Source: Pavona decussata (Eukaryota). From it: a stretch of DNA of 64,000 nucleotides. The position numbers and the translations under genes were made by a program. This document shows positions 42,771-64,000 of this stretch, piece by piece. Within the stretch, counting starts at the first letter, position 1, and each line of letters begins with the position of its first letter. The DNA is taken from NCBI GenBank assembly GCA_977016875.1, contig CDRNST010000115.1, positions 1-64,000 of the forward strand, read 5' to 3'. Below the pieces are notes generated by a model. That model worked only from the letters and a program-made list of their open reading frames with translations, did no database searches and was not told the origin of the DNA.

Positions 42771-43621
42771 AATTGAAAAACTCTGAAAGCAGTATTGGAG
42801 AAATATGGATGTCACTGGATCACAGTGAATGACTCTTGTGGTCAACCTTTTGTTAAGTACACGTTTTTTGCCTGAATGGTCACATTTGCACGCCAAAGGT
42901 ATAAGCAAACCCATTAAACCACCGCTTACCTTTTTTAATAATAATAACAAATCTTTAAACAATGAGATGCCGAAGCCAAGGTGGTGGTCAGGCGAAGAAA
43001 ACAAGTCGATCATACAAGATGTTATTGCTACGTTTTAATTCCAAAGAAAAATACAATTAGATAGATGCCACATAACAAAAGCCAGCTTATTTATAACCCC
43101 TTCGTCCCCGAGAAACCAAACCTCGTATACCTCCAAACCGTGTAATGGGGACATTTGGCAGCTCTGTCTAAATCGCGTATTCAAATTTTCACTTTTTTAA
43201 CAAACGTAAGAGAGCTGAGTACAAGATCATCACTCTTCGTTAAGTGTTCGTTTTAAACAGGTCGGAAAACATCAATTGCGTTCTTTCTTGATCATGAGTA
43301 CCTCGTATAATTATTTGCTTGAGCAAATGGTGAAAGAGCCAATACTCCGGGTTAATTAAGTGAACTAATTCATCATAAAATTTAATTTTTAAATTACTTT
43401 TCTTTCCCCGGACTTTTGTATGCAAGGGTAAATTAGGCATTTTCAAGAGAAGTTAATTACAGTGCAGTCAAACATGCCCTGACCGTAACTCTAAAGTACA
43501 TGTACTCCTTATTACGTACGGTTTACTCGATCTTAGAGCGACGTTAAATGAAATATAAGTTCTACTGCTGACAAGCGCGCACTGAGATGTCTGCATTACT
43601 CAGAGGAAACCCCAAACCGGT

Positions 43622-43974
43622 TTAAAGTCGACTGTCAATGTTTAAGTCCAGAGACTGTTCAGGTATATTCTTCAAGGAGACCAGTTGAACCATTTCCTTG
43701 TGTTCATCAAACTGCTTCTCCCTAAAAGTTGAAACTGTATCGTTGCTGCTGACAATGCTGTCTCGAGTACCTTCACATCGCTTTTCAGATTTCATTCGCT
43801 TATTCAAATATTTCATCTTTGCTTTCATCTCCCGAATTTCACGTTTCCGCTTCTTTATAATAGGACCTATCTTCCTTGTCATGTCTCGATAGAATGAGTC
43901 CACGAAATTCTTCATCTCTCTAACGAGGGACTCTTTGTAAGCAAATTGGTTGGAAGAGGCCTTTAACTTTGTAT
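43622..43974 (-). CDS. Last exon: cytoplasmic basic coiled-coil tail ending DSRL*
   Basis: ttcttcag|AT ACA AAG; phase 1 matches upstream exon. Confidence 0.8.
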
Positions 43975-46900
43975 CTGAAGAAAAAGAAAATGATATGGCC
44001 AACGAAAATTTACGGGCATTGTTCGATGCTGGAACGGAAGTTACGTACTAGCTCCTCTCCACTTTTTTTTTAATCGCTAGGCAATAGCCGTGGTTACATT
44101 GCACCGTTTATAACGATAATAGGCTAATTTAGCAACAGAACGGGAACGTAATTTGAGGACGCGAGAGCTCGCGGAATAGTCTGAACACGAGTCTATTTCG
44201 ACTATATATGGGCATTCTTGATGCGCACACCGTTATTAACTGACGTTCCCGTTCTGTTACTAAATCAGCCTAATAGCGCTCTAACCACTTCCAATCATGT
44301 ATACCTCTTACTAACCCACTTTGTTGTCAGGCATGTAAGAGTGAGTGAGTGAGTGAGTGTCCGTAAACAAACAGGTCTACAGCGCGTGCACAGCACTACC
44401 CACATGTACGTAATGCGTACCTATTTTTTCCTCCTTGATTTCGGGTGGCCCATAAATAAAGAGAAAACGAGGATCCGTACCTTACGGTAGGGACCGAGAA
44501 AACGAGGTTAGTAAGATATTTACTATATCTCTGAGGTTAATCGGGCATCAAACTTTCAAATTTAGTGGGCCGTACAGTGAAATACAGCCCGCAAAACTGA
44601 CCAATCACATCGTGCGTACTGAGAAACATGATATATTTATTTACTAATTTCTTTATAAACGTAATTCCATTTTGACACAGCATTATGGCCCCTAAATGAC
44701 ATCTAGTTGAGGGAAGATATACTTTCTTCAAACCCGCCATTTAAGGAAGTCACATCGTGTCAAACTCCAATTTAGTTTAATATCACAAAAGCAGCCGCGG
44801 ATTAAAATAAAAATTATTACTTTGCACGTAGAGTTTGGCATATTCTGATTTATAATATAAAGGAGGGAAATTCAATTTCCTACGTACAGCGAAGAATCTT
44901 GCTTGCAGTCACATTAATGAACCAGCACAAACCAGCATCTGAGACAAAATTGCCGCTTTATAATTATGTCTCAAACGCAATTACTTACTGANNNNNNNNN
45001 NNNNNNNNNNNNNNNNNNNNNNNNNNNNNNNNNNNNNNNNNNNNNNNNNNNNNNNNNNNNNNNNNNNNNNNNNNNNNNNNNNNNNNNNNNNNNNNNNNNN
45101 NNNNNNNNNNNNNNNNNNNNNNNNNNNTACTTTTAGTCAGTCAGTCAGAGTGAGTGAGTGAGTGAGTGAGTGAGTGAGTGAGTGAGTGAGTGAGTGAGTG
45201 AGTGAGTGAGTGAGTGAGTGAGTGAGTTAGTTAGTTAGTTAGTTACCCCATTTTTCACCTTTGTTTCTCCGCCGAATGTATACAAAAAAGTGATAGGAAA
45301 GTCCGGTTGTGATAGCCATTCCCAAGAGACCAAACAAAGAAGCGATGGAGATGACGAACATTTGCGATGAACCATCAAATAATCCTGTACTTTTCTCCAC
45401 CACCGCATCTGCCGCAGGTGCCTGTGGAAACCAGTGAAAAAATAAAAAAGAAATATTTTGCTCAGTCCATATTTAGTTCATTAATAAATAAATAAGTTCA
45501 TTAATAAAAAGTTCATTAATAAAATTAACTGTCTAAATAATACGTGAATGTCATCATTATGGGTACCTCGATGTTCGACCGAGGGTGGTGCTTCAACATT
45601 CGAAATTTTACGTTCAGCTTTTAAGGTGGCTCACAGTGGTTTCAGCACTTTCTATCAATTCTAATTTGATAGATCAATCTACCACTCTTAGTCAATTGAT
45701 ACTGTACTTATGGTATAAATGCCTGGTCATTGGTAAACAGTTTTTTTTTACTTAAGAGATTACCTAGCAACAATATAACCTGTTAAAAACAGCCCAAATT
45801 TGAGCTTTAAGTGATAATAACTCAAAAACGAGATAAGTGCCCCAATTTTTTATTTTTCAATTGTAAAAACAATAATTTAAAGGTTTGAAATTTTCGAAAA
45901 TTTAAGGTGGCCCTGAACCCCTCCCTACAAATATTTCTAAACTCTGCATGAAGTTGTATCTGTACATGTGATCATAATCCCCTAATAAGAAATGGGGGTC
46001 ACCAATATTGTTTCTGAGTTATAACTAAAATTAGAGGTCCTTTAACTACTTTACTAATAACTGTGGTCAGCGGTCGGCTTGCGAGATGGCGGCGGATTTT
46101 TCGAGCTTTGAGGAAATTCGCAACTCCTAGGTGTCCTTTATCCCTAACTTCATGTTAGTATCTTGCCATGTGCCGACTTGTCAATTTATTTTAATTATTT
46201 GTTGTTTGGCTAGCTGGCTTCTCTAGCCCTCGAGGTTATTCTAGGCAGCTAGTGTCGTATTGTATTTTCAGTTTAGTTATTTTTGGATCCCTTCTGTAAC
46301 TGTTGGTACATATAAAGGTGGTGTTGCGCTTTAATACCACTATTGTAGTATCAACCGATAAAGATTGGTAGTAACGATCCATGAAATTAAAAGAGCTGGG
46401 AACCGTTGTGAATCACCTTAATTTATTTCCTCCCCTCCATGCTTATATGTTCATAACCTCTTATGTTCGTAACTCTTCTTTCAATAGCTCTTATCCTTGT
46501 TGGAACTCAAAGCCGGACAAAAGAGGAAAAATCACTCAAACAGCTGACTCATTTATTATGTAATATATCAAACACGAGAAGGTGTGTTTCGTCAGATATC
46601 CAAACATTGAGAAGTAGGTTGGAAAAACGAGGGGCAGCCGAGTTTTTTTGAACGACTTCCAGGTGTTTGGATATCTGATGAAACACACTTTCGAGCGTTT
46701 GATATCGCTTCTCAAATGATCAATAATTCTTGGAGAAATTCAAGGCTAAAGTTGGCAAAATTTTATGGTAATTAGGATCACATATCCAAACCACGGTCAC
46801 GGTAGTGATTTTCTTTGTTTTCTCTTGATGAATTATTAATGAGTTTGAGAATCATTATTCTCATCTATTTACTAGGCTTAAACAAATATACCATAACATC

Positions 46901-49900
46901 TATCCGTTGCGCAGGTTACCAACTATCAGTCAATCTTTTCAAACACCTTTTCAACTGGAATTTTGGTTTCTGTTCGTTTAAATAGCTACCACTGAAACCT
47001 CCTTGTTGTTTACATACACTTCTCCTTTTAAAAACAAAAAATGCTTCTTAACCTCAATTGTCTTTGTCATATTCCTGATGGTCTGAAATATTTCACTGAT
47101 GTGCATGTCGATGTAATCCCGACATCTTTGTTCAACATTCCTTGCCGCCCCTGAAAGCACCACTCCATAACCAAATGGCCGATCAAGAATCTGCTTCACA
47201 AACACGCGCTCGTCAAAAAGCGTTTCTTTGTGCTCAGCTGCAACGTAAGTGTCAACCAAAGCGCCCTGGATCTCGTCCTCTTCCAAGGCTGTTTGAATGT
47301 CATCCAAGTTGTTATATTGGCGTTCTGTAAATTAAATGATCAAGGAAGAAAACTGTATTCATTAAAGATGTTTAAATTCATGACTTACGATGATTTGTTT
47401 TTTGGTGGGGAGGGGAGGGGAAAACAGTCGGACAAAGTATGGTGAAAAGAAAATATGTCATTTGCTAGCATCCACTCCAGATAGAGTAGTAATGCCACTT
47501 TCAACTTCCTGCTACAGAAACCCAAGATAAGCACTTTCTTGTTGATCTTCCGTATATTTTAGAATTCAGTCGGACCGAATTTATTTTCCACCATGAATAT
47601 CCTTAGCTATTCTTATTTTAATACTTCTTGCCTTCATTTTTCTCAGGGTCGAGAAATCTGCTGTCAAATGTAGCAGCCAGAAGATTTAGATGCCTTTCAT
47701 GGTTTCTACACTAGTAAAATAAGAGCGTTTGGTATCTCCTTTCGGATTGTGTCCCCAAATTACAATGAGATTTTCCTAAGCTATAAGGCATTGACACGTT
47801 AATAAAGTTTTTATCTTATCTTATTTACTTAAACACACAACCGTTTGCTCTGACAGCCTATGACGCAGACGCTAGTCTCTTCTTCTACTGTAATGTTGTC
47901 TTGTCGGAACTAAACGTTCGGCGTGCACAACCGATGTGTCCTAGATAAGTGTAAGGTGTCTCGAGTTTGTTTACTACTATTGTAAAGTAGATGTTATTGT
48001 CACGTTAATAAAGTTACTGTTGTTGTTGCTCACTTGTGTTTACTCTCGCGTTCTTGAGAATTCCCAGGCGGTATTCTGTAGAGTTCTGAATGGCCCCTAC
48101 CTAAGTTGTAAAAATTAAAAAAAGAAAAGCATTATACGAGGGCTAAAACGTGACAAGACATACTTTTTCCCCGAGTATGTCTGTCACTGACTGAAAATAT
48201 AAATCTATCCTTTATTCACCAAGCTTCGCATTTATTTTACAAAGGACATCTCATTGACTCTCATTGAGTTTACAAGCGTCAGAGGAGGGGGAGTGGCCTA
48301 GTGATAAGGGCGCCGGACTTGAAATCCGGATGTCCAGGGTTCAAGTTCCGCCTCGGCCACGCTTGTAAATAGCGAGGTGGGATTTTTAACATGTTATGTT
48401 CGATTTGATAATTATTTGTTTCCCGTTATTTCTGAGTGGAATGCCTGTAAACTAGCTGTGGATAGCTAAGTGCATTCCACTATAAACAAAGCATTTATTA
48501 TTTTATTTATTTTTTATTAGCGTCCAACATCGTTTCAATATAGGGACTAAAAATGTGCTCTCTCGGGGCTTTGTTGTTCAACAGAAATATCTCCAAAGTA
48601 AACCTTGTGATAAGTTCTCGAGTACCCCGCGAGCAGAGATCCTTTTGAACTTCCTAGAAAATCGGGAAGATCGTGAGAGTAGTCTCTCGATGGATGATGA
48701 TATTACAATCAAGCTCACAATGGAAGACAAACGAGAACAAGCCACACTTTTATTACACGTGTGTTATTCTTAACTCTTTGAGCAGTTTTATACATTGATT
48801 TGACTGGCCCACAGTTAGTTATACGAACTAGTTTATGTCGGACGCGTCAACTAAGCCATTACCTATTCTAGAAAACAGTTATCCTTGCTCTACCCCTGGC
48901 GTTGATAAAAAAAAAAAAACAAGAAAGAACTTTTTTCTTTGTAACCCTTGCGGGGGTACAATTTTGAACTTACCTCTCTACCGTAGAGCATAATTTCCTT
49001 GTCCACGGTAAGAGATGTCAATGTCGTGGCAATATTACCAATCAGAATAGATATTATTACGATTCCAGCTAGTGTCCACATTATACCAAAAATACGTGCA
49101 GTGAGGGACTTGGGCGCTCGGTCACCATATCTGCCAAAAACAATCAATCAAGGAATTTAGATGAGACTAGGAATACAGTAGAGATCACTTTCCAAACCAC
49201 CGAATGTTCTTCAATTGTCGATGAAAGAATTTAAAATAGGTTAAACACTGATGGCATGTTATCATTGAGACGCAACGGATTATGAATGTAAGTGTTATTT
49301 GTATGCTCCAAAATTTAAATAGTGAGCCCGTTAGGAAACGTTCCACTCGCGTATTCCTTTGTCCATGTATGAAGAAAATGTTACGACCAATCAGGAGCCG
49401 CGTGTTATATTTTTTGACGTGTGCGTAGTGGCAGCGTTTCGTTTAGCGGAGCTACAGAGGGAGATTTTACCAGTTTGACTTCAGATAATTCCAACGTTTA
49501 AGTAAATTTGTTTAGCAAAAATAACATGATACAAATCAACTCCGAAAGCGTCTTTTGCAGAATAACAACATGATAAGTTTTTAACATCAATTGGAAACTC
49601 GGAAAAAATCCGAGCCCCAGATGGGATTCACGGAGAGTCGTGGGTTTAAATCCCATCTGGAGCTCGGATTTTTTCCGAGCTTCCAATGAATGCGAAAACT
49701 TATCATGTTATTTCTACAATACTCTGGTTGGATGGTTGCATCTCTGATATCCCTTAACGTGACTGCGCGATTCAGTTATGAGTCATATGCCTGTCTGATA
49801 TGCCTTAATGTGACTGCGTTGTGCAGTTATAAGTCATATAGGCCTGTATTGATTTGACTGTGTCACTGCGTAATGCAGTTCTAGTCAAAAACCCACATTT

Positions 49901-52900
49901 CCCCCTTGCAAGCCAACTCGTTCGTAAATACCTTACGCGCGCACCTCCCATGAAGTATTCTATGTTTATTTGTGTACCTCGGTTATGAGTAAGAGACTTT
50001 CCATAACTTCGTACTCATGGGTACCTTTTACTGATTTAATTAATGTCAAGTATTTTAATATCTCACCCAACTGTTGTCATGGAGATGAAAGACCACCAGA
50101 ATCCTTCACCAACGCCTTTCACAAAACTGGGCGGAAATTCCCCAGGGTTGTACCTGGAGTCCTGTTATAAAATTGCAATAGGAATTTTGCAGTGAATTCA
50201 AATGACAGAGAGGGATGAGGACCATGGTAACGATAAAAAAGCAGCACACAATGATAAGGATAACGTGACGATAGAAGACGAGTATAATAAGGATGGGAGT
50301 GACAACAGGGAGGGCGGGATGAGGTGAAGGGGGGGGAATGAATACGAAGAGGAAGATTAAGAAGGAAAACAAGGGATAATGAGGAGAAAAACAAAGAACG
50401 AGTGTACAAGGACAGGGATAAAAATTATGATCCGGACTACGAAAAGATACAAGAAATTAAAACGTTGTTCATATTTCAATACACGCCTTCTTTAAGAATG
50501 TTAAAACCGGCGTTAAAACATGGTTTCATGTCTTAAAGGCCTTGCATCCACAGACGTTCACAAACAACTCACTCGAAGTTATGGACTCCCAAAACAAAAG
50601 ATTCAAATCAGTCTATCCAATCGGAAACAGAGAAACTCTCTATGAAGTACTCACCAAAAGCCAAATGATAAATCCGGATATAAAAGCCGTGCATGTCGAC
50701 AGCACCAAGAAGGGAAGGATATCCAAAACTGCGTTTATCATGTTCATAGCAGCTGTCCCAGGAGGCCTAGTAGTGGCAATAAAAGCCACACCGGGGGATT
50801 CCACCAGGTTGATGTATGCATATTCCCGCAAGTATTTCGTGATGTATTTGTTTCCGTATATTGGAAAACTGATTTGTGGAACCTCGTCGACGTCTGCGAG
50901 CACTTCTAGGACATTTTTCTTGGCTGAACGTAAACCTTTCCCATTTTCTATAATCTCTATGATAGTGTTGCCGTGTGGGGGACATATTCCACAAGCCGCA
51001 TACACCATGTCAGTGACAATACTGCTGAAAATTCCCTCGAGCTTTTTGTCCTTCTCGTTCACCTTAAGGTATGGAGAAGTCGTCCAGTAGTTTGTGTAGA
51101 GAACTTTTGGACAACGACAGGTTTCTTAAAAAATATAAGACACTTGTTAAAACAGCAAAGGTTATTTATCACCCTTGCGAAACATGTCTAAACAATAACC
51201 TAAACAGATATTATAGAATAATTATATAAAGTCAATTTAAAATGATACAAACAGAGAATGTCGTGTTAGGGATAACTGAGCAGCCAAAATGTGCCGCCTT
51301 CGCTTAAATACATTATTTGTATGGGAATATTTTTTATTACTTTTTTATATTTTTTCCCTCGGAAAAAAGCTCAATATGGTACTTTTAAATGATAGCAGTA
51401 AGGTATATATTTTTACCACTTTTTGCCAGAACTAGGTTTCATAAACTGAAGATTTGTTTCAAGACGATTTAAGGCTTGTGTACGTACCAGCATACACATA
51501 TTTACTGTAAGGTCCCACTCCTTTCTGTGTAGATGCAGCCACTTTAATCCTGTAAGTCGAGTACGTTTGGACTTGAAGCGGAATCCAGAGTTCATTTGAT
51601 TTTAAGGTCACAGTGTGCTCTTCTGCGTCAAAAACGTCTCTCTCTGCTGTTTTCATTCTTTGATACTTCACAGAATAACCAGTTAGAAGGCCGTTGACGT
51701 GACCGTCAGGAACTGGACTCCAGTAGATGTTAATGGACTTTTCTGAAGTAAGGTTTTTAGCTCTGACATTCTGCGGAGGTCTGGTAGGGACTTGAATGTT
51801 ACAAAGTGGGAGGGGAAATTTATAAATTAACTTCTTTAACATATAAAGAATATACTCTGCAGAAGAATAAAACAGTAAATAAAGGTTTAAAGCAAAAGAA
51901 ACAATTTATCTCAATACAGAAGGTAATTGAAAATTTGCTGGTAAATCGAGAAAGAAAACTTTTGTTCAAACCAAACATTCGTTTCCACGCCCCATCCACG
52001 CAGCACCGCAGTTCCTTTAGAAACTAACCCTTATCCATTTCAAAATTCACAGTTTTCTGTGGTCTAATAAACCATACAATGACGTTATTAAGATGTTCAA
52101 AATTTAAGTGGAACCACGGGCCGCAGTTGAGTGGTTTTACTGCCAAGTTTGAAACATTTTATGGTGTCATTTTATGGCCTATAAGACTTGAGATTATAGA
52201 AAACTGTCGTCGATTTTATTTGTTTCGTTCGTGTTCAGTCATTTATATGCTCAGATTTCTGTCTTATTCCTCTGTAGGAAGTTAAGGCTCAGAGGGCAGA
52301 TGCTTGAATGAATAAAGAACGATAAGAAGTAGAGGAGTAGAAATGTGTGAGATGGTGAAATACTTGGCGCTTTAGCTTGGTCTGTGAGGCTCTAGCAACT
52401 GATTGTTTCATTGGTGAGAATAATTGCGATAAGCGTATGTCGTTGGGCTGGTAATAAGGCATTAAAGAGGAATAAAAAGGGTATGTGGCGGGTGAGGGAA
52501 ATTTGAGGATGTATTACTTAATTGCTCTTGTAAAGACCATCCTAAATGTTCTAAAAACACATAAAACACAAACTTGAACTACATTGTTTTATCCTAGTTG
52601 TTGTTGTTGTTTTTCTTTCTTTTTTTTTATTTTTTTCACAGGTAAAGTAAGACCCGAGAATTTACAATCCATGTAAATGCACTCACCATCGCCCCAAGTA
52701 TAAGAAAACGAAGAATATTTCTCGCCACAGCCCTTGGAAGTCTTAGCACAGACTGCTACTTTGTATCGAGTAAAATACAACAAGTCACCTAAAACGACTT
52801 TAAGTGTGTTTGCATCCACTGTTTTGTTTTTCCAGTTCAGCGGTGAACCATCGTCTTTGGCAAACCAAACCTCATATCCCAGGAGCGTCCCATGTACGTA

Positions 52901-55900
52901 CGTTTGGCTGATAGGTTTCCAGGACACACTGATTGAACTAGAACTCGTGGATTCGATAATAGTGTTTGGGGGAGGCTCACTTGGGACTAAAAGCAAACAA
53001 AAAAGAATCGTTTTAGTATAAATGGATAAATACAATCTCTGGTATTATAACTATTTTTTTCAAAAACTCAAAGCAAGTTGAGCGCGGCCTAGACCTTTTT
53101 TTAGCTTCTTAAGCGTCACCTTGATAAAGTTAAGTGGGCTAGTGACTTTTCCACTGCTCTATTTTCCAACTTGTTTAGCTTTTAGTTATTTTGAATAACC
53201 CGTTGCCTACATTCACAATCTAAGTGGAAAATTTGAAAGTAAGGCAATTGAAAAACAATAAAAAAAATTGTTGTTTATTTATGTTTCTATTTATAAAGAG
53301 TTGTTGGTGACTGTTGGAGAATTTCGCTGTATTTTAGCCAAACAATTCGTTGACACTCACAGCTATTGATACAATAAGGTGAACAGAGACCCAGAAACAA
53401 CACGAGAACAGCTTCTACTGGGTGTGAACAATCAACTAAATTCTTTACAAAAACTGGACATGTCAAGCCTACAACATCAGTCAAGTGTACACATTGAAAG
53501 TTTACCATCTTCCTGAGTTTTTAAGGACACTGGTTCACTAGAGACTCCATTGCCAAGACTCGTAAAAGCAAACACGCGTAATACGTAGTTTGTAAACTTG
53601 TCCAGATCGTCCAGTGTCACTTCTCGCTGTGATGGGGACACTGATTTCATGAAATCCACCTGAAACTTTCCGGTTACTTTTTTGTACACGATGGCATAGC
53701 CGCGAAGTGGTGCTGCATTTAGCTGTGTGACAGCAGACCATTTTAGTGTAATGGATGTTGAGTTGGTACTGCTTGCTTCAAGTATCACAGGAGGTTCTTT
53801 CGGTACTGTCGAGAAAGGACATAGTTTGCAAATGAAATACATAACCAAGACTATGGTAGAGAGCTAGGCGTCACAAGCTAGAATGATATAGGCCTGAAAG
53901 AATGAAAAGGAAACGAATGATGGTTAGCGTATTGTTTGACGTAGCGCTCAGCATTTTCTTTGTCTTCAAATGTGTACGTAAGCGATGTGTTAAGTTGTCT
54001 TTGTATCCTATCTTTCAGGATAACGTTATAATAAATCTGACCTTCGAAAGGAAAGTCCTTTTACGGTAATGGGAATATGTGGATTAAGCAAATCTAAGCG
54101 CCTATGGGAAGTATAACAGGGACTTTAAGATACGAGGACATGGCGGCTTTTACAACGTCGCAACCGAGAAGACTCTGGTTCGAGGGCGGGAGAATAAAAT
54201 TTAAGATTCACAACGCGACGAAGGTCAAAAACAACTATGTTGTCGAGGTGTTCGATTAGCTTTATACTAATTATGGCCATAGGATTACTAAGTGCAATCG
54301 TGGAATTCTGTGCCTGGCATTACTTGACGTCTACGCCAATGCAATTCACAACAAATGGGCCGCTCTTGAAAATTGCTTCGGATTTATATATAGATGGAAC
54401 AGTGCACCCAATCTCCCGGCCTATCATAAACCAGAGAACTGTATATGACGGACATGACCGCGTTCACGTACTCAAATTCCACTGAGTCTGTACATTTTTA
54501 TTTCATTTATACCGAAGGAAGTATGGACGACTGACGTTACGATATTGGCACTATCTGATCTCTACGGCGACCTAGAAAAATTCGGCTTCAATAATATAGT
54601 AATAATAACTTATATTGTACCTTTTAACATAGAATGTTCAAAGGCGCATTACGGCATGAAGTATAATAAATAGTTAAACTATGCATTAAAAGCTAATGTA
54701 AAAAGATTTTAGTGAGAATTGAAATACTGAAGTGATCTAGATTTCGTATCACAACAGGTAAAGCATTCCATAGTGTGAGAGCCGCGGCGGGAGAAGACCT
54801 TTCCCTTAATGATTGCAACATTTTCCCACAAGGGAAGTGTAGTAAAATTCCATTATCTGAGCGTAAGTGATAGGTAAATTGTTGCCGGGCATTCTCCTCG
54901 ATAGGAAAGGAAACACGTTTGTATGGTGATCCGGCCTATCCACTTAGGCTCATCTACCGGCACCATTTTAAGTTTCCAAACTTTAAGAAGAACTTAAAAA
55001 TTGGCAAGGTGTACGCTGTTTGTGTACTCCTAAGAAATGCCCTGACTTGCCTTTATTCAAACACAACGACAGAATATTTTGGCCTTGAACCGCCCATTTT
55101 GTACAACTATTTAAATTAAAGCTGTCAGGTACATAATGTGAATAAATGTAGTACATCCAAAAGAAAACAAGGGGGCCCTTTTCATTTCATCTTGGTACAT
55201 CTGAGATTCAGTCTTGTGTATAGGAAAGTGTCACAAATGGCTTGGACTGTTATCGGGGAGCATTAAGGCAGAGAAAGCTTCCTTTCAGCCCCTAACTGAC
55301 AAGAGGGCGTGCACAATAGTTTTGAGCCCAAGCTTTGCCATTTACCAGCTTCCTCGCCCCACAACTGGGCAATTTAGCAAAAAGGTCTGAACTTAAGGTG
55401 TTTGAGTACTCAGTATTTACAAAGGTACGAAGAAAGCAGCTGTTCTTAAATCGCAATTTTGAACCAACAGCCTGTTCCTATATTTTTAAGGTTGACTTCA
55501 AAGCAGAGGTTACCTTAATCTAATAAAGGAATCAAATAGTCTTATGATATTTCCAATCGTGTGCACAAACAGTAGCTCTATACTTAACCCATTTTCTTCT
55601 CTTTCCTTCTTTTCGATTTTTCTCTTTTGTGGTCATCCAACAATGAGCGCGTCCCTATAAGTAAGGGTTCAACCTCTTGGGAAAGTCTTTTGTTCAATTA
55701 GGCTGAGTATAAGTTTCAGGTATAAAGATCAATCTGATATTCTTAATTTATTGTTGCTTCTGTCCTCCTGTTGAAAATAACGTTTCTCGAATCTTTCCAC
55801 TGAAAACTATCTAGCTAGAACTGATGCACCTGGATATGGGATAAATCTGCTCGTTATACCAGTTGATGAAAATATTTTTTAGAACACTGTGTCCACAAGA

Positions 55901-58900
55901 CATTCCAAACGTTTACAAAAACATTAATTTGTGTCAACTAAACTTAACGCGTGTCTTGGAACCTTGCCCTTCACACTCCACCCTTCAAGAAAATTTTAAA
56001 ATCATGCTGGCTTAATATCAAAACTTTTTGGGACAGTTATTTAAACAGAGTCTAACTTAAGCCGCTGTCTATCGTTCTTGTGTTTCTGACAACTTTTCTA
56101 TTGCGTTTAATCTGACATGTTTATTAATCTCCATTTTTCGGCTCTTCTCCTGGTCCATTTTTTGCTACTCTGCCTCAGCACTTTCTTCCAGTGGGAATAT
56201 TTTCTCCAACAGTTTTTCCAATTCAGTGGGCTCGATTTATATCAGGCCTTATGCCATTTGCCTTTTCTTTACCTCTTAAATTCGTTTTATGCCTGTTTTG
56301 GAATATTCCAACATTTTCCCAAACTGAATGGAGCCTTTCTTCGAGGCATAATGATTTAGGTTAATAATTTCTTGGCATAGGATCCAAGCGGTTGCGGGCG
56401 TCTTGATGACTTTCCAGTAATTAAAATGCACGTTACCCCATGTCTTTTTGTTCATCAGTTCCTTTACTGATTCTGTGCAGGTTACGACAAACAAGGAAGG
56501 AGAAAATTTCAATTTTCCTCCCCCTCCCAAGCTTTATCCAATTTCACTAATATTGTGGCTGCGCAGGGTTTGCAAATCTCCTTATTTAAAGTTTATTTAC
56601 GTAAAGGAGTATTAAGTCACTACACCTTAAAAAACAAAATTTAACAAGGTAACTACGTCTCCAGTGATTCATCAATGATATTTAATAATGACAATAAACA
56701 AGTCTAAGTACGAAGATCAGCCTTTCAAAATTAGCATATGCCTGCATGCACTTTAACTCTTGCGACCCTACATTTTATTGGCATTTTTGCTGCAAGTTGT
56801 TAGTTGTCAAAGAATAAAAATTCGTGTCAATGTTCATAAACTGCAAAACTGAAAGTTGATGAAAGGGCGTTTGGTTACTTACCATATCTGCTTATAATAT
56901 TGAGTAATTCTGCTGTATTATCACCTAATCTTCCTTCTGCCATTTCCTCTTGCAAGAAGACAATCTGTAACGAGTCTACTGCGACGTAGGTGATATTTAA
57001 ACTGGCAATGACACTTCCTTTCCTTTGGAGGGGAAATTCAAAGTAAAAAGTCATTCTATCCAGTTGGCCCAGGTTGTTAAAATAACGAAGAACTTTATCC
57101 AGCGAAGGAATCGCTGTCAAGAGGATAAATGTACCCCAACTAATAGATTTTATCCCATGGAAAGCGATTAATACACTGGATAAAGTTCGTGTTGCCATAT
57201 CTAACCGTCTTCTTTTCTTACGAATCACTATTGAAAAATTTGAACCCGAAACACTGCCGAGGAAAAGCGTATCTAGTTGGAAACTTGATATTGATAAATG
57301 AGTTGTAAAGGCGCGTATCCGAAACTCCCCTCATTGAAAATTAATCAGGAACTTTCTCTCTGGCGTATCGTTAAACACAAATGCTGCTTGTAGCGATTCT
57401 GATTTTGTAGGATTGACAATATCGTTTGTCTCAGTAAGAACCTATTAATTGGCTACCTATTGAGTGACCAGTAAAATCACGTCAAGGATAGTGCCTCCTG
57501 ATACAAACGTATTTTTGAACAGTTTACGAATTTAGTTTTTGACTACGCGAGAAAAGTAGCTTTTAATACGGACTGTTGGAATCCAAAAAATAAATAAGGG
57601 GTAACCAAGTATTTTTCAAAGATAACAAAATAAAAATAAATGGCTTTAGCACTACAGCGTTAATTGGGGACACTATAAATCGGTGAAATAAATATACAAA
57701 CTGGACATAACATTTAAAAAATCCCAATTGGTGGAATCCAAACAAAACAATTCCAAAAAGCGGTGTAAACTGCAAAACAATGTATGGCATTTGTTCCCCA
57801 AATTAAAGCTTAAAATTATTTCCGAAGAACGTGTGGTTACCCCTACTTTTCGTTTTGGATTCCAACAACCCTTACTGGGATCTGCTTTTCCCCCACAATT
57901 AAAAACCACCCCAAAATACTTTTGTCTCAGAAGGCAACAGTCTTAAGAAACCCGACCATCCGAGATGCGCAGGACGTATGCGCAGTAGCAAATAAAGGCA
58001 TCGTCCTCAGTAAAGCCCCTTCACTGAGAGGCCATCTTTATAAGGTGGCTGCGGCCACCATTTGGCCGTCCCAAGGAGGGCTCTTCTTCTGTGTTTACAG
58101 TGTGAAGCGGCCACCAAGAATTTTTAAATTCTTGTCTTAAAAGACACACAGTTTAGCTTTTTCTTTATCCATGCTCCATTAGAAGGAATTAGTTCAAACC
58201 TTTCTTTTTAAATTTTGGTTCCCAACCGTTTAATTGTCTACTTACTTCGAAGCAATTATCAAAAAAACTTTGAAGCTTTGAGTAGTTTCAGCAGTTGTTA
58301 CAAGCCTCCAAACGTTCCTCAAAACAAATAAAGTTACGTTCCTACTTCGCCGTATGGTAATTTATGGCGAGCCCCTATATTTAGCAGCTACTTGCAGAAG
58401 CGACTGCTTGTGGGGCTTCAACCGTTTCTGACAAAACTTGAATGTTATGGGAAAAAGGAAAAGATAACTTGAAACTGATCTATATGATCGTCTAGTCAAA
58501 AGAAATATAAGACTGATATCTACCTCAGCTCTAAGACTTCCACGTTGATGATACTTTCACCTTTCATTTTGTATAAATTGATAATCTAAAATTGAAAATA
58601 AATAGGATAAGTATGCCATTTGTCTGAACATTAAATCGTTGAACCCTTCACTAACAAAAACGTCCAATGATAAAACCGACGAAATATTGAACATAATTTT
58701 CTCAAACAGCATAGCGAAAGGGGTTCAGCTTTCATGTGGTTGATCACGCACTAAGCAAAAGGCATCTTGTGCATCACAAGGGACAGCACCACAGAAAAGT
58801 GTAACATTACAGGTTTTTGTGAATAATTACATAATTACAACTTAGTATCTCGTCCACAGAGAAAACGTGGTTTCCCCCTTGTATAAAAAGTAACGCACAA

Positions 58901-61900
58901 AGCCACGGATGAGAAGAAAAAAAGAAAAGGCAAAACAGCAAATTTCTGTAAAATCAGCAACTGGAAAGGTTGACTTCAAGTCTCCAGTATCGGTAGGGTC
59001 TTAAGGCGGTGCTAAGGGAGTGAGCGCCAACTGCATGTCATGCGTGTGTGAAAGAAAACTCGATTGCTAAATGGTTCCAATGCTTACGTATTGTGTTATC
59101 TCGTTTACAAATGTCCGATAGTCGTCACTTGTCGGGTCGCCAAGGTCATCACTCCATGCTTTAGTTCTGAACCTGATCTTGAAATTTATCTCATCAGCTG
59201 ATAAAGAATTAAAAAAGATACGAAATGTTTAATTTCACTGCAGTTTTTCCTTTACATAAACAAGACAATACGAAGGTTTGCGCACGACTAATATGAGAAT
59301 GCGGCATAAACACCTCTGACTTAAAAGATGTATTATATGAGCTTTCTTGGGTTTTAAAATTAATATTTTGGTCTTAAGTTTGAAAAGGGTTGATGAACGT
59401 TTTCAGTGTACCAGAAGTATTTTTCGATATTTTAATGATCCGATCAGTTTCCCTTCATTTTCTTTCGATGCGTAGTAGTAACTCGTTAAATTTTCGAACG
59501 AACACTTTGTTATTTGCCTTCTCGTATTCTCGTGGCTTAGTTCTGTAGTCTCGAAAATTAAAGTTATACTGACCTGGACATTTGTTCATATTACAGGACT
59601 CGGTGTCGGTTGCTGGACCGTCGCAGGTTTTGCCCCCATCAACTGGTGATGGATTATTGCACAGTCGGGTCCTTGTCCTGGTTCCAGTGTTACACGGCTT
59701 ATTACAGTTTGGCCAAGAAGTCCAGTTGCCCCAGTTACCATCAACTACACAACAAATAAATAGTAGGCGTATAGATGTGGCGCCATGATATCATTCATTT
59801 AATGTAGAACATTTGTTGTTTTCGTGCAAAACAATGCTGCTTGTTCCCCCTGCCATTTTTTCTGTTTTGATACATTTATGTTAGACATTACAATAAAGTT
59901 ACCACACATTCTTAGATGTTGATTCCGACGATAACATTGCGGAGAAATAGTCAGTTATTGAAAATATTTTCTTCCAAACTAAGTCTCGTTTGGCAGTAGG
60001 TTTTCAGACTCGTGCACCTCTCTTGTAATGAGACAAGTATGTAACAAAATAATACAGCAACGACAATTAACAACATGGTAAACTTTTATTAACCCTTTGA
60101 CCCCTGAAGACGCCTATAGGCGCGCTTTCATATATGGTGTACATTTTGCTCTAAAAAAAGGGGCCAAAGGCACTTTCTAGGCCCCAGGCCTCCTCTACTA
60201 TTGCAAGAAACAACGTGATTCAAAATGGCGTCTATTTTAGCTAGATTTCTCTAGTTTTCAGGGGGAAATTTTCAATTTTTTTCGAAGCATTGGTTACAGA
60301 TGTCATCTGGTGATTTAAAAATGGCATCCTTCTACTCAGACATGGAGGAAATTCATCGAATTGTGATGGAAAGACCCGACATTAGTAACGTTTCGTAGGA
60401 GTACAGTTTCGAGTACGAAACCGCCGATTATTCTTCCCCAGAAGAGACAGAAAATGTGAATATTGTCGAAACATCAAGAGAGCAGCATCTCATGCACGTA
60501 AAAATCGTGATGGACAAACATCGAGATGGAAACCAGCTCGGCAACAACGCTGTAGAAATGAAGGGAAGACTCTAAACCTGAATCAGAGCGATTTGGATTT
60601 TTTATACAATACAAAATAACCACAATTTTCAGGCCCCAACGATTGACCGACTCATGCCTTTGAGGTCGATATCAGTCCGACTATATTTTTTGACAAGCTG
60701 TTTTCAGGTAAAGTGTGATCCAAGAATGAAAACGATTGCTGATTGTTGTAGCTTATATAGTATTCAAGTGATATACTGATAGTTGGACATCAGTAGCTTG
60801 CATGGATGGTAATAAACTTGGACCCATGACAGCAAATGTGATTTTTTTCTTTTTTGGCGGACATTTTGAATGACTAACCAGACTAGTTAATAATTAACAA
60901 CATAAAGTTTACATTTTCAAAATGCTCATCTCATCTACTTTCTAAAAATATATGGTTATGTATGGTTTGGATGAAAACTTAAGCTTTTATTAGCCATTTT
61001 CTCTGCCATGTCAATTTTTAGCAAAACTTAGTAAAAAATTCAGGGGTCAAATGAAGATTGACCAACAGGTGTAAATATTTAATGGCTGGCAATTTTATGT
61101 TTGCATGTCAATTATGTTGATGGAGAAGCAATTTATTTAAATCTCACATTGACAAAAATTACCCTTTCTTTTGTAGCAGATTAGCGTCTCGTTAACGAAA
61201 CAATCTCGTGTAAGCAAGATCGATTAAATTGCAGCCTTCAACAACAAAAATTGACTTGAAAGGAGAAGAAAATGTTGTCAAACCTTCACCAACACTTTTT
61301 GACGCAATAACTCTTGATGGTGGCACCAAAACACTATCTGGTGCTCGTGATCCTGGGTAGACAGATTGAGGCTGCTTTGACAGATTCTTGGTTTTAGACA
61401 CTTCAACTGGTGACAATTCGCTGCCTTTAGACAATTGCACTGGTGACCATGACAATATTGATGGATATTTTGTCTGTAGTGACGGTTGAAGTTCTGTATT
61501 ATGTTGTGTCACTGGTCGCAGTACAGATGAAGACTGCAGTGAAAGGGAGGATACTCGTTTCATACTTTGAGGTGTTGATTGTGATATCTGTTGTGTTGTT
61601 TGAGGAAACCTGATCGCTTGTGACGTAGACGATGGAACATTTGCCAGTTGCACTAACGATGAGAAGAGTGGACGTGAAGACTTTTGTTGCAGAATCTCAG
61701 ATCTCGATTCTTTCAGTGACGGTTGTGGAGACGGCTGATACGAAAGTGATGTTTGTGCTGCTGACTGTAATGATTGGGGTGAGGCATTTTGTTTCGACAA
61801 TGACTGTAGTATAGGTGAAGACTGCTGTGATACTTGTTGAAAACTAGCACTTTGGGGTGTATGTTGTAAAGCTATTGGAGACACAGGAGAAACTGTGATA

Positions 61901-62462
61901 GACACAAGTAATGACAAATCTGAATAAATCGGGCCATTGACATGATTAGAGTTATTTGATTTTTTTTTTTTTTCGCAAATCCGCTTTCCCCCTTCCTGTC
62001 AATGAAGTCGTTCAATGTTTACGTCTAAAGAAAGTATGGGAGGTTTAAGGTACGACACTGTAGCTCTCCGGCCTCTCAGAATTACTACGTTTATCGAGTT
62101 TTTCTCATAAAAACAAATCATGTCTGTGCCAAACCATTCCAAAATACTTCTTAAAGATCGGTGGATGCGTAGTTGATATGAATGAAGTAAACACGCGGCA
62201 TCCAAGTTATATCTATGCCTATCTCCAGATATACATCAAATGTATGACTAAAGGTTATCTGTATCATTGTTACCGAATACTAACAAACGTTATAAGTTAT
62301 CTGAACCAATGTACAGAGTTCTTATTAAAGCATTAATTAACATAAGAAGAATAGTGTTAAACTTATAGCTGGACGTACCACTTGTGCACCGATAATAACG
62401 ACCATTATCTGTTATGACACACGTCTGACCTTGAGGACAGTTGGTTCCACATGTGTTGTTAC
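43622..62462 (-). CDS. Multi-exon gene: adhesion-ectodomain (EGF-like, mucin, TSP1, SEA, 3xFN3) iGluR/GluR0-like channel with K+ filter TTVGYGD; >=16 exons, >=~1230 aa, start exon not identified
   Basis: All exons bounded by AG/GT with compatible phases and no stops; exons listed separately. Confidence 0.85.
44121..44271. mobile_element. PIF/Harbinger-type MITE
   Basis: TIR AGGCTAATTTAGCAACAGAACGGGAACGT / ACGTTCCCGTTCTGTTACTAAATCAGCCT; AAT on both flanks. Confidence 0.75.
44992..45127. other. Assembly gap (136 N)
   Basis: Run of N. Confidence 1.
45134..45245. repeat. Compound microsatellite (AGTC)n(GAGT)n(AGTT)n
   Basis: Directly visible, abutting the splice donor and the gap. Confidence 0.95.
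45247..45421 (-). CDS. Exon: M4-like transmembrane helix
   Basis: APAAD..MFVISIASLFGLLGMAITTGLSYHFFVYIRRR; ccacag| ... |gtaact. Confidence 0.85.
46563..46706. repeat. Palindromic non-autonomous element
   Basis: ATATCAAACACGAGAAGGTGTGTTTCGTCAGATATCCAAACA pairs with TGTTTGGATATCTGATGAAACACACTTTCGAGCGTTTGATAT. Confidence 0.7.
47053..47324 (-). CDS. Exon: S2 lobe of ligand-binding-like domain
   Basis: EIQGALVDTYVA...PFGYGVVL; tacag| ... |gttaag. Confidence 0.85.
48034..48100 (-). CDS. Exon: start of S2
   Basis: VGAIQNSTEYRLGILKNARVNT; cttag| ... |gtgagc. Confidence 0.8.
48283..48519 (+). mobile_element. tRNA-derived SINE, internally deleted
   Basis: A box TGGCCTAGTG, B box GGTTCAAGTTC, (TTATT)n tail. 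Confidence 0.7.
48974..49130 (-). CDS. Exon: YGD + inner (M3-like) helix
   Basis: YGDRAPKSLTARIFGIMWTLAGIVIISILIGNIATTLT; ggcag| ... |gtaagt. Confidence 0.9.
49567..49709. repeat. Fold-back (inverted tRNA-like repeat halves)
   Basis: CTCGGAAAAAATCCGAGCCCCAGATGGGATT pairs with AATCCCATCTGGAGCTCGGATTTTTTCCGAG. Confidence 0.75.
50067..50161 (-). CDS. Exon: pore helix and filter start
   Basis: DSRYNPGEFPPSFVKGVGEGFWWSFISMTTVG; aacag| ... |gtgaga. Confidence 0.9.
50655..51124 (-). CDS. Exon: S1-like lobe + M1 helix
   Basis: TCRCP..SPYL..EGIF..ACGIC..ESPGVAF..ILPFLVLSTCTAFISGFIIWLL; ttaag| ... |gtgagt. Confidence 0.88.
51488..51790 (-). CDS. Exon: FN3 domain 3
   Basis: PTRPPQNV..IYWSPV..GLLTGYSVKY..YRIKVAAST.KGVGPYS; phase 1-1. 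Confidence 0.9.
52687..52986 (-). CDS. Exon: FN3 domain 2
   Basis: PSEPP..SISVSWKP..GTLLGYEV..L..FTRYKVAVCAKTSKGCG; phase 1-1. Confidence 0.9.
53506..53805 (-). CDS. Exon: FN3 domain 1
   Basis: PKEPP..SITLKW..GYAIVY..LDKFTNYVLRVFAFTSLGNG..KTQED; phase 1-1. Confidence 0.9.
54118..55119 (+). mobile_element. PIF/Harbinger transposase remnant (intronic)
   Basis: LENCFGF/IDGTVHPISRP..QRTVYDGH.RVH.LKF, YGDPAYPL, LLRNALTCLY..YFGLEPP; AGGGACTTTAAG end. Confidence 0.8.
54590..54885 (-). mobile_element. L2 LINE 3' end nested in the Harbinger remnant
   Basis: YHLRS..LL..P..RSS..AALTLWNALP..IR and short (TTA)n tail. Confidence 0.7.
56883..57022 (-). CDS. Exon: SEA domain C-part (RKGSVIA)
   Basis: Phase 2-1; GSV motif. 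Confidence 0.8.
58524..58585 (-). CDS. Exon: SEA domain middle
   Basis: IINLYKMKGESIINVEVLELR; tttag| ... |gtagat; phase 0-2. Confidence 0.75.
59088..59197 (-). CDS. Exon: SEA domain N-part
   Basis: FKIRFRTKAWSDDLGDPTSDDYRTFVNEI; phase 1-0. Confidence 0.82.
59574..59744 (-). CDS. Exon: thrombospondin type-1 repeat
   Basis: VDGNWGNWTSWPNCNKPCNTGTRTRTRLCNNPSP..GGKTCDG..ESCN..CP; phase 1-1. Confidence 0.93.
60093..61051 (+). mobile_element. piggyBac-like non-autonomous remnant
   Basis: TTAA|CCCTTTGACCCCTGAA ... TTCAGGGGTCAAA; decayed acidic ORF start inside. Confidence 0.6.
61284..61919 (-). CDS. Exon: Ser/Gln/Pro-rich mucin-like stalk
   Basis: Open 241-aa frame, ttcag| acceptor; donor at 61283 or 61289 (both phase 1). 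Confidence 0.7.
62379..62462 (-). CDS. Exon: small Cys-rich EGF-like module
   Basis: NNTCGTNCPQGQTCVITDNGRYYRCTS; ttgcag| ... |gtacgt; phase 1-1. Confidence 0.7.
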
Positions 62463-63597
62463 CTGCAATGATAGTTTATTAAGTTAATTTGAAACAGTTT
62501 ATAATCAACAGTGGTTCTGACTTTTGATTAAGTAAATAGAAAACCTAAGTGAAAGGTAAAGTGAAAGCTTTTGAACAGCATGCGGGAGTGGAAGAGAAAG
62601 CCAGGCGGCATATTCCTCTGAAGGTATCTTTTCACCAAGGTTGCCTAGCACTGCTATGTCAGTCAATTCGTTGCAAAAAAAGTCGTCAGGGTATTAGTAA
62701 CGTCTCACGCTGTTGCTTTGCCTCGCAACGGATAGAAAATGTACTCTTCCCTGCAAGAATTAATGTATTAGTTCAACAAATGAAAGAAAAATGGGAAATA
62801 CAATATCAATCCCTGATTATGTATTCTTGGACCGTTTCTTTCATTTGGGCTGCGACTAGTAACCAGTTCTTTATCGTGAGCCGTTTGAGTTTACGCCTGT
62901 TTATTACGATTACACTGTATCACCGATTGCTCGGCTCTTTTACTTCAGTGGTTGTAGTTTATAAATCGTCCCAGTCTTTTTTCTTTTCTAAGATAACGCT
63001 CTTTTCACGGTGTTAATGTAATAAATTCATTTTGTAATTATTGAGGTTATTAATATATGCGTACAAATAAGAGAGTTGTTTGTCCATGTTCTTTTGGGGA
63101 ACAATGAAAGTTCCTTGTTTGGAAAGTTACGCCTGCTAGACAGCACTTGTAAAGACTGTTTTTATGTAACAACCAATAACTGAGTTTACGTGTGGACGCA
63201 CATTTTATGTATTTTATTGATTATTAGATTATTTTATTAACGATTAGATAAGTAATTGTAGTTAGGTGTCCCCAATCAGTGTACATTGTATGCTAGCGAC
63301 TTCGACACTATAATAAAGTTCTTATTATGGCCGTAAAAACTTCTGGATGCCCAGATATCCTAAACAATGATTGGGCGGCCAGCCGTAGCCAATCAATGCA
63401 ACGACCAAAGTCCTTACGATTAAAATCCCAACTCCTAATCATAAATATCCCAGTAATTAAATTCTAAAACTATTTACTATCCATAAAATCCTCAATCTAA
63501 ATACTAAAACTTCTGTTCCTCACGATGGAAACACTTAAAAAAAAAGTTTAATAAAACGCCTAATGTCCATTATTTCAAAAGGTTAAAGCGCCTCGCA

Positions 63598-63632
<35 letters not shown>

Positions 63633-64000
63633 GTGCAGTTAAAAAACGTATGTATGCTAAAATAGAACCACATAGGGCGCGCAGCGTAACCTATGCGATG
63701 TTAAGGAACTATAAAAAGAAAACTGCTGAGTTAAAAATTTAAAAAAAAATAGCGATAAAATATGAAAATCTCATAAAATATAAAAGTTCTCCGACACAAA
63801 AAACGATATGGAGCTTCTACGCTATTCCTTAAAGGAAAGTCAATTGACGGTAGCTTTGAATGTTCTAACTATGTTGAGAGAACTCGAAATGGTAGCCTTC
63901 TGCATCCTTCTCAATATGTCATAACCCCTGCTGCCAAAGAGCTTCCTCATTGTCAGGTCTACATCCCTTGACCATCCCCCAAGCACGTCAATGATGATGT
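63598..64000 (-). mobile_element. R4/Dong-like RLE non-LTR retrotransposon 3' end with (TAA)n tail
   Basis: IIIDVLGGWS...RMQKATISSSLNIVRTFK..* (stop 63840-63842), 3' UTR, then ~11 TAA repeats. Confidence 0.7.

Follow-up and report, generated by a model that had tools for sequence, protein, structure and literature searches.

The origin of the cation-permeable glutamate receptors of animals from K+ channels and periplasmic binding proteins (PBPs) has been argued mainly from a bacterial protein, GluR0. GluR0 conducts K+, and its inverted membrane topology has been mapped experimentally (PMC13099474); a protein that unites a glutamate-binding domain and a K+ filter has been reported in bacteria only (Ger et al. 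2010; PMC2950845). Here we describe a gene of the coral Pavona decussata that appears to join such a combination to an adhesion-type ectodomain. It occupies the minus strand of a 64,000-nucleotide (nt) stretch of contig CDRNST010000115.1 (hereafter the window, to which all positions refer) and runs from 62462 to 43622. The predicted product is a type-I membrane protein in which a cysteine-containing exon, a mucin-like stalk, a TSP1 domain, a SEA domain with the motif GSVI and three FN3 domains are followed by a channel module. A predicted disulfide-rich junction (TCRC...CGxC) joins the ectodomain to this module, which consists of an S1 lobe, membrane segment M1, a pore loop (P) with the filter TTVGYGD, segment M3, an S2 lobe, segment M4 and a tail. 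We consider it probable that this is one transcribed gene in which the adhesion-type ectodomain is carried on a GluR0-type K+-filter channel module with M4, the ectodomain positioning the channel at contacts.

Transcript evidence and gene structure

For the RNA comparison, contigs of four runs were aligned to positions 47000-52995, and three of the runs (X1, X2 and X5, from two studies) were informative. Their contigs show joints at all of the boundaries predicted in this interval (51790|52687, 51124|51488, 50160|50654, 49130|50067, 48097|48971 and 47324|48034), and all six have the ends CT..AC on the plus strand, hence GT..AG in the direction of the gene. Contig 7 of X2 (1123 nt) passes from the third FN3 exon through the S1/M1, P-loop and M3 exons into the first S2 exon (S2a), and an X1 contig of 2101 nt passes from S1/M1 to the second S2 exon (S2b) and then continues for 1116 nt more, its first unaligned letters being the start of the M4 exon. 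Likewise, a loose end at 47052, found in X1 and X5, carries the 30 bases with which the M4 exon begins. RNA support thus extends both to the joint within the filter, TTVG|YGD (49130|50067), and to the joint between the FN3 array and the channel (51124|51488). Because single spliced contigs cross the latter junction, the possibility that the FN3 and channel exons belong to separate genes is ruled out, and an earlier note on this DNA, which had read the whole as one transcription unit from the letters alone, is borne out from the second FN3 exon through M4. RNA-Seq runs filed as coral metagenome also contain small parts of the window.

Two further observations were made on the RNA contigs. In one X1 contig, 51790 is joined to 52789 rather than to 52687, an in-frame skip of 102 nt (34 codons) that uses a donor within the second FN3 exon; this joint may come from an alternatively spliced isoform, or the contig may belong to a paralog or another allele. 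In a coral metatranscriptome run (X7), two intron stretches, 48378-48476 and 49400-49999, reach a contig depth of 1200-2900, in contrast to a depth near zero over the exons of the gene; these stretches are probably dispersed transcribed repeats.

The exons described in the earlier note are all present on the minus strand. We count 16; each has an AG acceptor and a GT donor, their phases are compatible throughout, and there is no stop codon inside any of them. They encode at least 1216 residues, of which the ectodomain accounts for about 800. The domain exons (cysteine-containing, mucin, TSP1 and the three FN3) are all phase 1-1, and phase 1-1 exons are the usual signature of exon shuffling. 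The first modeled exon (62379-62462) was previously taken for an EGF-like domain; it has four cysteines, not the six-cysteine pattern, and no Pfam match at E 1 or better, so that this part of the domain assignment did not stand, whereas the TSP1 and FN3 calls were recovered with Pfam and the SEA call was recovered as a weak match. The stalk exon that follows (61290-61892; 200 codons) is rich in Ser, Gln and Pro, with S, T, P and Q making up 55% of its residues, and a relative from Nematostella (P0018) has a comparable Ser/Thr-rich stretch ahead of its own TSP1 domain. The TSP1 exon (59574-59744) matches Pfam TSP_1 at E 6.9e-12 and is collinear with the orthologs P0181 and P0180. The three FN3 domains lie at 53506-53805, 52687-52986 and 51488-51790, with Pfam fn3 matches at E 2.6e-13, 4e-10 and 1.1e-9, respectively; the second has RNA support from the joint 51790|52687 in X5 and the third from 51124|51488 in X2 and X5. 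The exon at 62462 begins in phase 1 and so presupposes one or more exons further 5', which would be expected to encode a signal peptide and are missing from the model. A weak candidate for a first exon, with an ATG, 22 codons and a GT donor in phase 1 (62546-62612), comes from sequence inspection and is unconvincing as a signal peptide. Further upstream on the same strand, an open frame at 63843-63998 (..GGWSRDVDLTMRKLFGSRGYDILRRMQ..) resembles a fragment of a mobile-element protein, and a search with ARAGORN showed tRNA genes to be absent from 43000-63000.

The SEA domain is spread over three exons. The first (59088-59197; phase 1 to 0) has a weak Pfam SEA match, and the ortholog maps to it; the last (56883-57022; phase 2 to 1) carries an autoproteolysis-type G-S-V-I motif within KGSVIAS, and its acceptor is positioned as in paralog C204a. 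A small middle exon (58524-58585; phase 0 to 2), which emerged when candidate AG..GT exons were listed and scored against ortholog SEA domains, resolves what would otherwise be a phase mismatch between the two. GS(V/I) is kept in P0004, P0179, P0180, P0181 and P0018, and Pfam SEA scores over the window exons and family members range from 16.5 to 26.9 bits against a cut-off of 26.4. A stop-free frame of 100 codons with an RKKRRR stretch (57330-57023), in frame with the last SEA exon, was considered as coding sequence and rejected as intronic: its acceptors are in the wrong phase, and the C204a acceptor sits just before PGSV, the counterpart of KGSV here.

The channel module begins with an exon encoding the S1 lobe and M1 (50655-51124), which includes the four invariant cysteines of TCRC...CGxC and is supported by RNA joints, paralogous exons and the predicted fold. 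The next exon (50067-50161; joints 50160|50654 and 49130|50067) encodes the pre-pore motif NPxEFP, the pore helix and the first half of the filter, and it ends in phase 2 as ...SMTTV followed by GG; the exon after it starts A-TAT-GGT-GAC, so that splicing restores TTVG|YGD. The earlier note had inferred this intron-split filter (..TTVG|YGDRAP) from the sequence, and both the exon borders at 50067 and 49130 and the RNA joint agree with it. Positions 48974-49130 encode the rest of the filter (YGDRAP) followed by M3; RNA joints are again present here, and Ion_trans_2 scores 24.5 bits (cut-off 22.5) and Lig_chan 25.1 bits. S2a (48034-48100), which provides the first strand of the S2 lobe, is bounded by the joints 48097|48971 and 47324|48034 and is supported by the family alignment; S2b (47053-47324), present in RNA contigs, provides the bulk of the lobe, with an invariant Asp (LVDTY) and a YG.VLSG motif. 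A pre-M4 linker and the M4 helix follow (45259-45421; donor in phase 1), for which the loose end at 47052, a helix in the predicted model and the family alignment are the evidence. The last exon encodes a charged, helical cytoplasmic tail (43974-43625, with the stop codon at 43622); its acceptor is in phase 1, it contains an L..E(M/V)..F motif conserved in the family, and the same exon is found in paralogs.

An assembly gap (44992-45127) falls between M4 and the tail. In the Porites evermanni ortholog P0181, M4 (residues 822-878) runs straight into the tail (878-997); the M4 donor and tail acceptor are both in phase 1, and paralogs show the same two exons in the same order. Given this continuity, together with the phases, the tail motif and the paralog exon order, the gap lies within an intron and no coding exon is expected there. 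A microsatellite, (GAGT)n then (TTAG)n, adjoins the gap at 45148-45245 and is its likely cause.

Homology, fold and distribution of the channel module

A search of the genome (602 Mb) with the S1/M1 exon matched 29 places, mostly over the full length of the exon, so the family comprises at least 29 loci. In 12 paralogs on seven contigs, inspected over 20 kb each, the order FN3..S1/M1-P-M3-(S2a)-S2b and the exon limits are the same in every case, and all 12 keep the filter as TT(V/L/I)|(G)YGDR. Conservation extends to other species. In an alignment of 18 full family modules, with the window exons as separate rows (A1), GYGD is present in 17 of the 18 members, which come from anthozoans and hydrozoans, and the lone exception has GFGD. 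The closest paralogs (G000:C204:3567660-3568127 on the plus strand and 3580233-3580697 on the minus strand; loci L013/L025 and L014/L026) are 73% and 67% identical in S1/M1 and share the TSP1-SEA-FN3x3 architecture; they lie tail to tail about 12 kb apart, and this pair is a local duplication within the TSP1-SEA-FN3x3 subfamily.

An exhaustive HMMER search of 1.84 billion representative sequences returned 288 clusters, and in the 30 that were looked up all named ones were cnidarian (Stylophora, Nematostella, Montipora, Actinia, Clytia, Hydra and Hydractinia). Two further searches added Pocillopora, Porites, Desmophyllum, Acropora, Paramuricea and Dendronephthya. By these sequence searches the family is so far confined to cnidarians, where it is found in corals, anemones, octocorals and hydrozoans. 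One product of the exhaustive search, P0023, was set aside; its 10 repeated short matches are those of a bacterial cadherin-like repeat protein and it is no relative. Gene models of orthologs from Porites, Pocillopora, Stylophora and Actinia are collinear with the window exons, and the same fusion occurs in independent gene models of at least 10 cnidarian species. The RefSeq model of Stylophora P0004 (XP_022801143.1) jumps from mid-M3 to S2a (..LVIISIL|VGAIQNST..) and is without M4 or tail; judged against the RNA-confirmed exons described here, it is probably mis-spliced or truncated.

While the channel module is constant, the ectodomains vary: Pfam scans show one to nine FN3 domains, TSP1 plus SEA, or CUB plus Ig, and F5/8C and EGF ectodomains are known from source names and precomputed tables only. 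Members are filed under a variety of names, including 'contactin-3-like' in Stylophora, 'PTPRQ', 'sidekick-1' and uncharacterized in Nematostella, 'Cubilin' in Acropora and 'Kv subfamily F member 1, partial' in Paramuricea. The adhesion-receptor names among these have been transferred from the ectodomain only. Among 11 cnidarian members there was no match to SBP_bac_3 or Lig_chan-Glu_bd at E 0.01 or better, both of which are seen in the bacterial protein P0193, and Lig_chan scored 18-34 bits, mostly under its cut-off of 30.8. Domain-based surveys would therefore probably miss the family. Ion_trans_2 scored 43-54 bits in full members that keep the pore. ANF_receptor was likewise without a match in the 11 members, which have fn3, TSP_1, SEA, CUB and Ig domains instead. 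The earlier note knew of no characterized family with this architecture, and we found no published description in the searched literature, which leaves most subscription journals outside its scope.

Several comparisons bear on the relationship of the module to known channels. When a family profile was searched against 5.8 billion proteins, the next matches after the cnidarian members were some 90 bacterial proteins, 350-410 residues long, that combine SBP_bac_3, Lig_chan and Ion_trans_2 and score 94-133 bits, as opposed to at most 71 bits for plain K+ channels. With hhalign, the family could be aligned to 20 bacterial GluR0-type proteins from M1 to S2, over 188 columns and with 30% identity (probability 99.95%, E 2.8e-38), and the motifs NPxxFP, G.G.G.W and TMTTVGYGDR.P are common to the two groups. 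In searches of the PDB by sequence, the S2 profile had the ligand-binding core of GluR0 as its best match (E 4e-4); the pore profile had Kv4, Kv1 and KvAP (E about 5e-14), with ionotropic glutamate receptors (iGluRs) absent among its 60 best matches. Single-sequence PDB searches with the S1/M1 and S2b exons gave no matches. In the iGluR/GluR0 superfamily a conserved acidic residue of S2 binds the alpha-amino group of the ligand. The S2 Asp is invariant in the cnidarian family (D51 in alignment A3) and aligns with the GluR0 Asp in ..VMFDRP..; in the bacterial alignment (A4) an invariant Asp, D304 in ..VVFDRP.., pairs with it by motif. On this sequence evidence the channel module is a true homolog of GluR0-type channels, and the closest relatives of the family outside Cnidaria are the bacterial GluR0-type channels, not animal iGluRs. 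The earlier note had aligned M3 directly with a conserved iGluR stretch; that alignment stands indirectly, by way of the profile alignment to bacterial GluR0-type channels. M3 itself reads ..IISILIGNIATTLT.., from which the SYTANLAAF motif is absent apart from an ..N.A..LT remnant, and the filter is TTVGYGD rather than a Q/R/N-site pore.

The fold was modeled with AlphaFold on Nematostella P0018 (residues 780-1278), which has the same TSP1-SEA-FN3 architecture, and the model has a mean predicted local distance difference test score (pLDDT) of 83.4. In a Foldseek search of the PDB, the best 50 matches were all AMPA or NMDA receptors, over 440-511 columns and with E down to 4.7e-12. When the lobes were compared (model residues 18..363, a range that takes in the membrane insert), VIA-align placed the GluR0 core 2pyy best (Z 20.9, root-mean-square deviation 2.3 Å, 201 of 212 residues), with a second GluR0 ligand-binding core, 1ii5, close behind (Z 20.6). 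The glutamine and arginine binding proteins of bacteria came next at Z ~19-20, ahead of the ligand-binding domains of GluN2D, AvGluR1 and a Mnemiopsis iGluR at Z 17.7. The S1 and S2 lobes, as modeled, fold as a PBP-II clamshell, in line with the clamshell anticipated in the earlier note, and the predicted order S1-M1-P-M3-S2-M4 is found in the exons, the family alignment and the model alike. M4 appears as a hydrophobic segment (45259-45421) that is conserved in 18 family members and as a long model helix starting at residue 399. A helix-loop-helix surrounds the pore in both alignment and model, and its orientation is taken from the extracellular-type domains ahead of M1 and from homology to GluR0. 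We also predicted a four-copy complex of the M1-P-M3 segment of Porites P0181 (residues 585-715), which scored 0.69 compared to 0.00 for the best of three controls; the score is a measure of model confidence, and the result may reflect memory of solved K+ channels. Contacts fell at the filter residues, runs agreed in at least 86% of contacts and pLDDT was at least 70; of 30 solved one-chain pairs, 21 attain the mark that this complex passed, whereas none of 23 proteins solved as single chains does. Taken together, sequence and model place the family in the iGluR/GluR0 superfamily, as neither an animal iGluR class nor a GluR0 ortholog.

Proposed mechanism and its alternatives

In the mechanism that we favor, four subunits would form an inverted, K+-selective pore, with the P-loop re-entering the membrane from the cytoplasmic side. 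Our reasoning for this orientation is that S1 follows extracellular-type modules and that S1 and S2 must meet on the same side of the membrane. Movement of the extracellular S1/S2 clamshell would pull the M3-S2 linker and open the pore. Given the TTVGYGD filter, from which K+ selection is expected, opening would lead to K+ efflux that hyperpolarizes or shunts the cell. The adhesion-type ectodomain would stand in for the amino-terminal domain of iGluRs and would most likely anchor, cluster or present the channel where the cell touches matrix or another cell. The modeled clamshell suggests ligand-type gating.

A number of points weigh against this reading. K+ selectivity and gating are inferred from homology. 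RNA coverage is limited to the part of the gene from the second FN3 exon through M4, and the upstream exons and the tail are drawn from splice sites, phases and collinearity with orthologs and paralogs. Moreover, X1, X2 and X5 carry a tentative 'RNA?' label; we take them to be RNA because their contigs are spliced, with intron-free joints. Neither a signal peptide nor a first exon was found within the window, and the extracellular position of the N-terminus is deduced from the types of domain and from homology. The modeled fold is that of a relative 38-70% identical per exon and not that of the joined product of the window itself. The remaining points concern S1. The alignment of the family with the bacterial proteins stops short of it, it had no significant sequence match in the PDB, and its family profile gave only chance-level matches to Far1. 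The S1 positions that are invariant in the cnidarian family are the four cysteines of TCRC...CGxC, two prolines and one glycine. In the 20 bacterial GluR0-type proteins an S1 Arg is invariant (R113, in ISITAxRA), and it is this Arg that binds the alpha-carboxylate of the ligand in iGluRs and in binding proteins. Mapping by motif order and secondary structure gave no Arg or Lys in the cnidarian S1 that is invariant or nearly so. Judging from the sequence, a standard alpha-amino acid held as in GluR0 is probably not the agonist.

The missing Arg also lends something to an alternative, put forward in the earlier note, that we regard as unlikely, namely that the protein is an adhesion channel whose K+ pore is opened by force on the tethered ectodomain or by shedding at the SEA site, with no need for a soluble ligand. 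The GS(V/I) autoproteolysis-type SEA motif is conserved in this subfamily, the four invariant cysteines tie the linker after the last FN3 domain to lobe 1 of the clamshell, and the ectodomains of the family are always of adhesion type (FN3, TSP1, CUB, Ig or F5/8C). However, SEA and TSP1 occur in only part of the family, many members having FN3 arrays or CUB plus Ig alone, and the full clamshell is preserved, including the invariant S2 Asp that aligns with the one in bacterial GluR0-type proteins, which fits a bound ligand better. Since many members are without SEA, its cleavage is not a general gate; gating by force or SEA cleavage is possible for the SEA-bearing subfamily.

A second alternative is that the protein conducts no ions and acts as an adhesion or scaffold receptor, with a vestigial pore and with a channel module that only anchors it in the membrane or provides a signaling platform; automated annotation does group members with contactin-3-like, sidekick-1 and PTPRQ. 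We think this improbable, as all 12 paralogs and 17 of 18 aligned members retain the filter together with its flanking residues, which is hard to explain without selection on conduction, and the pore profile matches working Kv channels at E about 5e-14. Least credible of all is an artefact, whether two adjacent genes merged, a pseudogene or bacterial contamination of the assembly. The nearest non-cnidarian relatives are indeed bacterial, an assembly gap lies within the gene span and the 5' end is missing from the model. However, (i) the joint between FN3 array and channel is bridged by single RNA contigs, as are five more GT..AG introns; (ii) no exon contains a stop; (iii) the same intron positions recur in the 12 paralogs on 7 contigs; (iv) the same fusion is present in the independent cnidarian gene models; and (v) the gap is intronic. 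We therefore retain as our working model a single transcribed gene that places a GluR0-type K+-filter channel behind an adhesion-type ectodomain.

A broader scenario can be put forward more tentatively, and we would rate it as somewhat less probable than not. Cnidarians may have kept, or acquired very early from bacteria, a K+-selective channel of the GluR0 type, to which M4 and dozens of exon-shuffled adhesion ectodomains were added. The family would then constitute a large, so far unrecognized class of 'contact-receptor K+ channels' that turn binding or contact directly into hyperpolarization. In pairing GYGD with M4, it would also represent the long-sought link from K+ channels or GluR0 to the iGluRs of animals. 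Whatever its origin, a binding clamshell, a K+ filter and the eukaryotic M4 are now found together in an animal phylum, with dozens of paralogs per genome. The transition from K+ channel to iGluR thereby becomes testable: a single scaffold allows selectivity and gating to be compared, and M4 can be probed for its role next to a K+ filter. If our reading is true, an inhibitory (K+) class of ligand- or contact-type receptors is added to cnidarian physiology. Many cnidarian proteins filed under the names contactin, sidekick, PTPRQ, Cubilin or Kv-F1 are, moreover, predicted channels with the wrong annotation. If, in addition, the ectodomains couple contact to gating, they would provide a direct link from adhesion to an ion channel for which we found no characterized precedent in the searched literature.

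Comparison with known systems

The bacterial GluR0 proteins (Synechocystis Slr1257 and others of 'Group 1') resemble the coral protein in having a K+ pore set between the halves of a PBP-II clamshell, and they share with the coral family the TMTTVGYGDR filter, the NPxxFP pre-pore motif and the invariant S2 Asp. They differ from it in that 'Group 1' members are minimal S1-M1-P-M2-S2 proteins of about 350-410 residues, without M4. The coral protein adds M4, a cytoplasmic tail, spliceosomal introns and an adhesion-type ectodomain of about 800 residues. Its S1 is also too diverged for detection by sequence with Pfam or the PDB, and the invariant ligand-binding Arg is missing.

With the animal iGluRs (AMPA, kainate, NMDA, delta, epsilon and lambda) the coral protein has in common the order S1-M1-P-M3-S2-M4, the cytoplasmic C-terminal tail and a large N-terminal extracellular region ahead of S1. 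Structural comparison of the family model agrees with this, as whole-module Foldseek matches to iGluRs range from E 1e-10 to 4.7e-12 and their ligand-binding domains reach Z of about 17.7. However, the coral family has the GYGD signature of K+ channels in place of a Q/R/N-site pore, SYTANLAAF is missing, and the LIVBP-type amino-terminal domain is replaced within the family by FN3, TSP1, SEA, CUB or Ig. Canonical K+ channels such as KcsA, Kv and K2P are alike in the sequence of the pore helix, filter and inner helix (Kv4.2 at E 5e-14), and a fourfold assembly is tentatively predicted for the pore of the coral family, with the score of 0.69 given above. In contrast to them, the coral pore is flanked by predicted extracellular lobes and preceded by a predicted extracellular N-terminus, its P-loop would be inverted, and it has no voltage sensor.

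The remaining likeness is to adhesion receptors and related proteins (mucins, PTPRQ, sidekick and contactin), which have FN3, TSP1 and SEA arrays, a mucin stalk and phase 1-1 exons as the coral gene does. These proteins end in a phosphatase, a glycosylphosphatidylinositol anchor or a single-pass tail, whereas the coral protein ends in an ion-channel module. On the evidence of sequence and model, it is in combining a K+ filter, M4 and an adhesion ectodomain that this cnidarian family is unlike both the known GluR0 proteins and the animal iGluRs.

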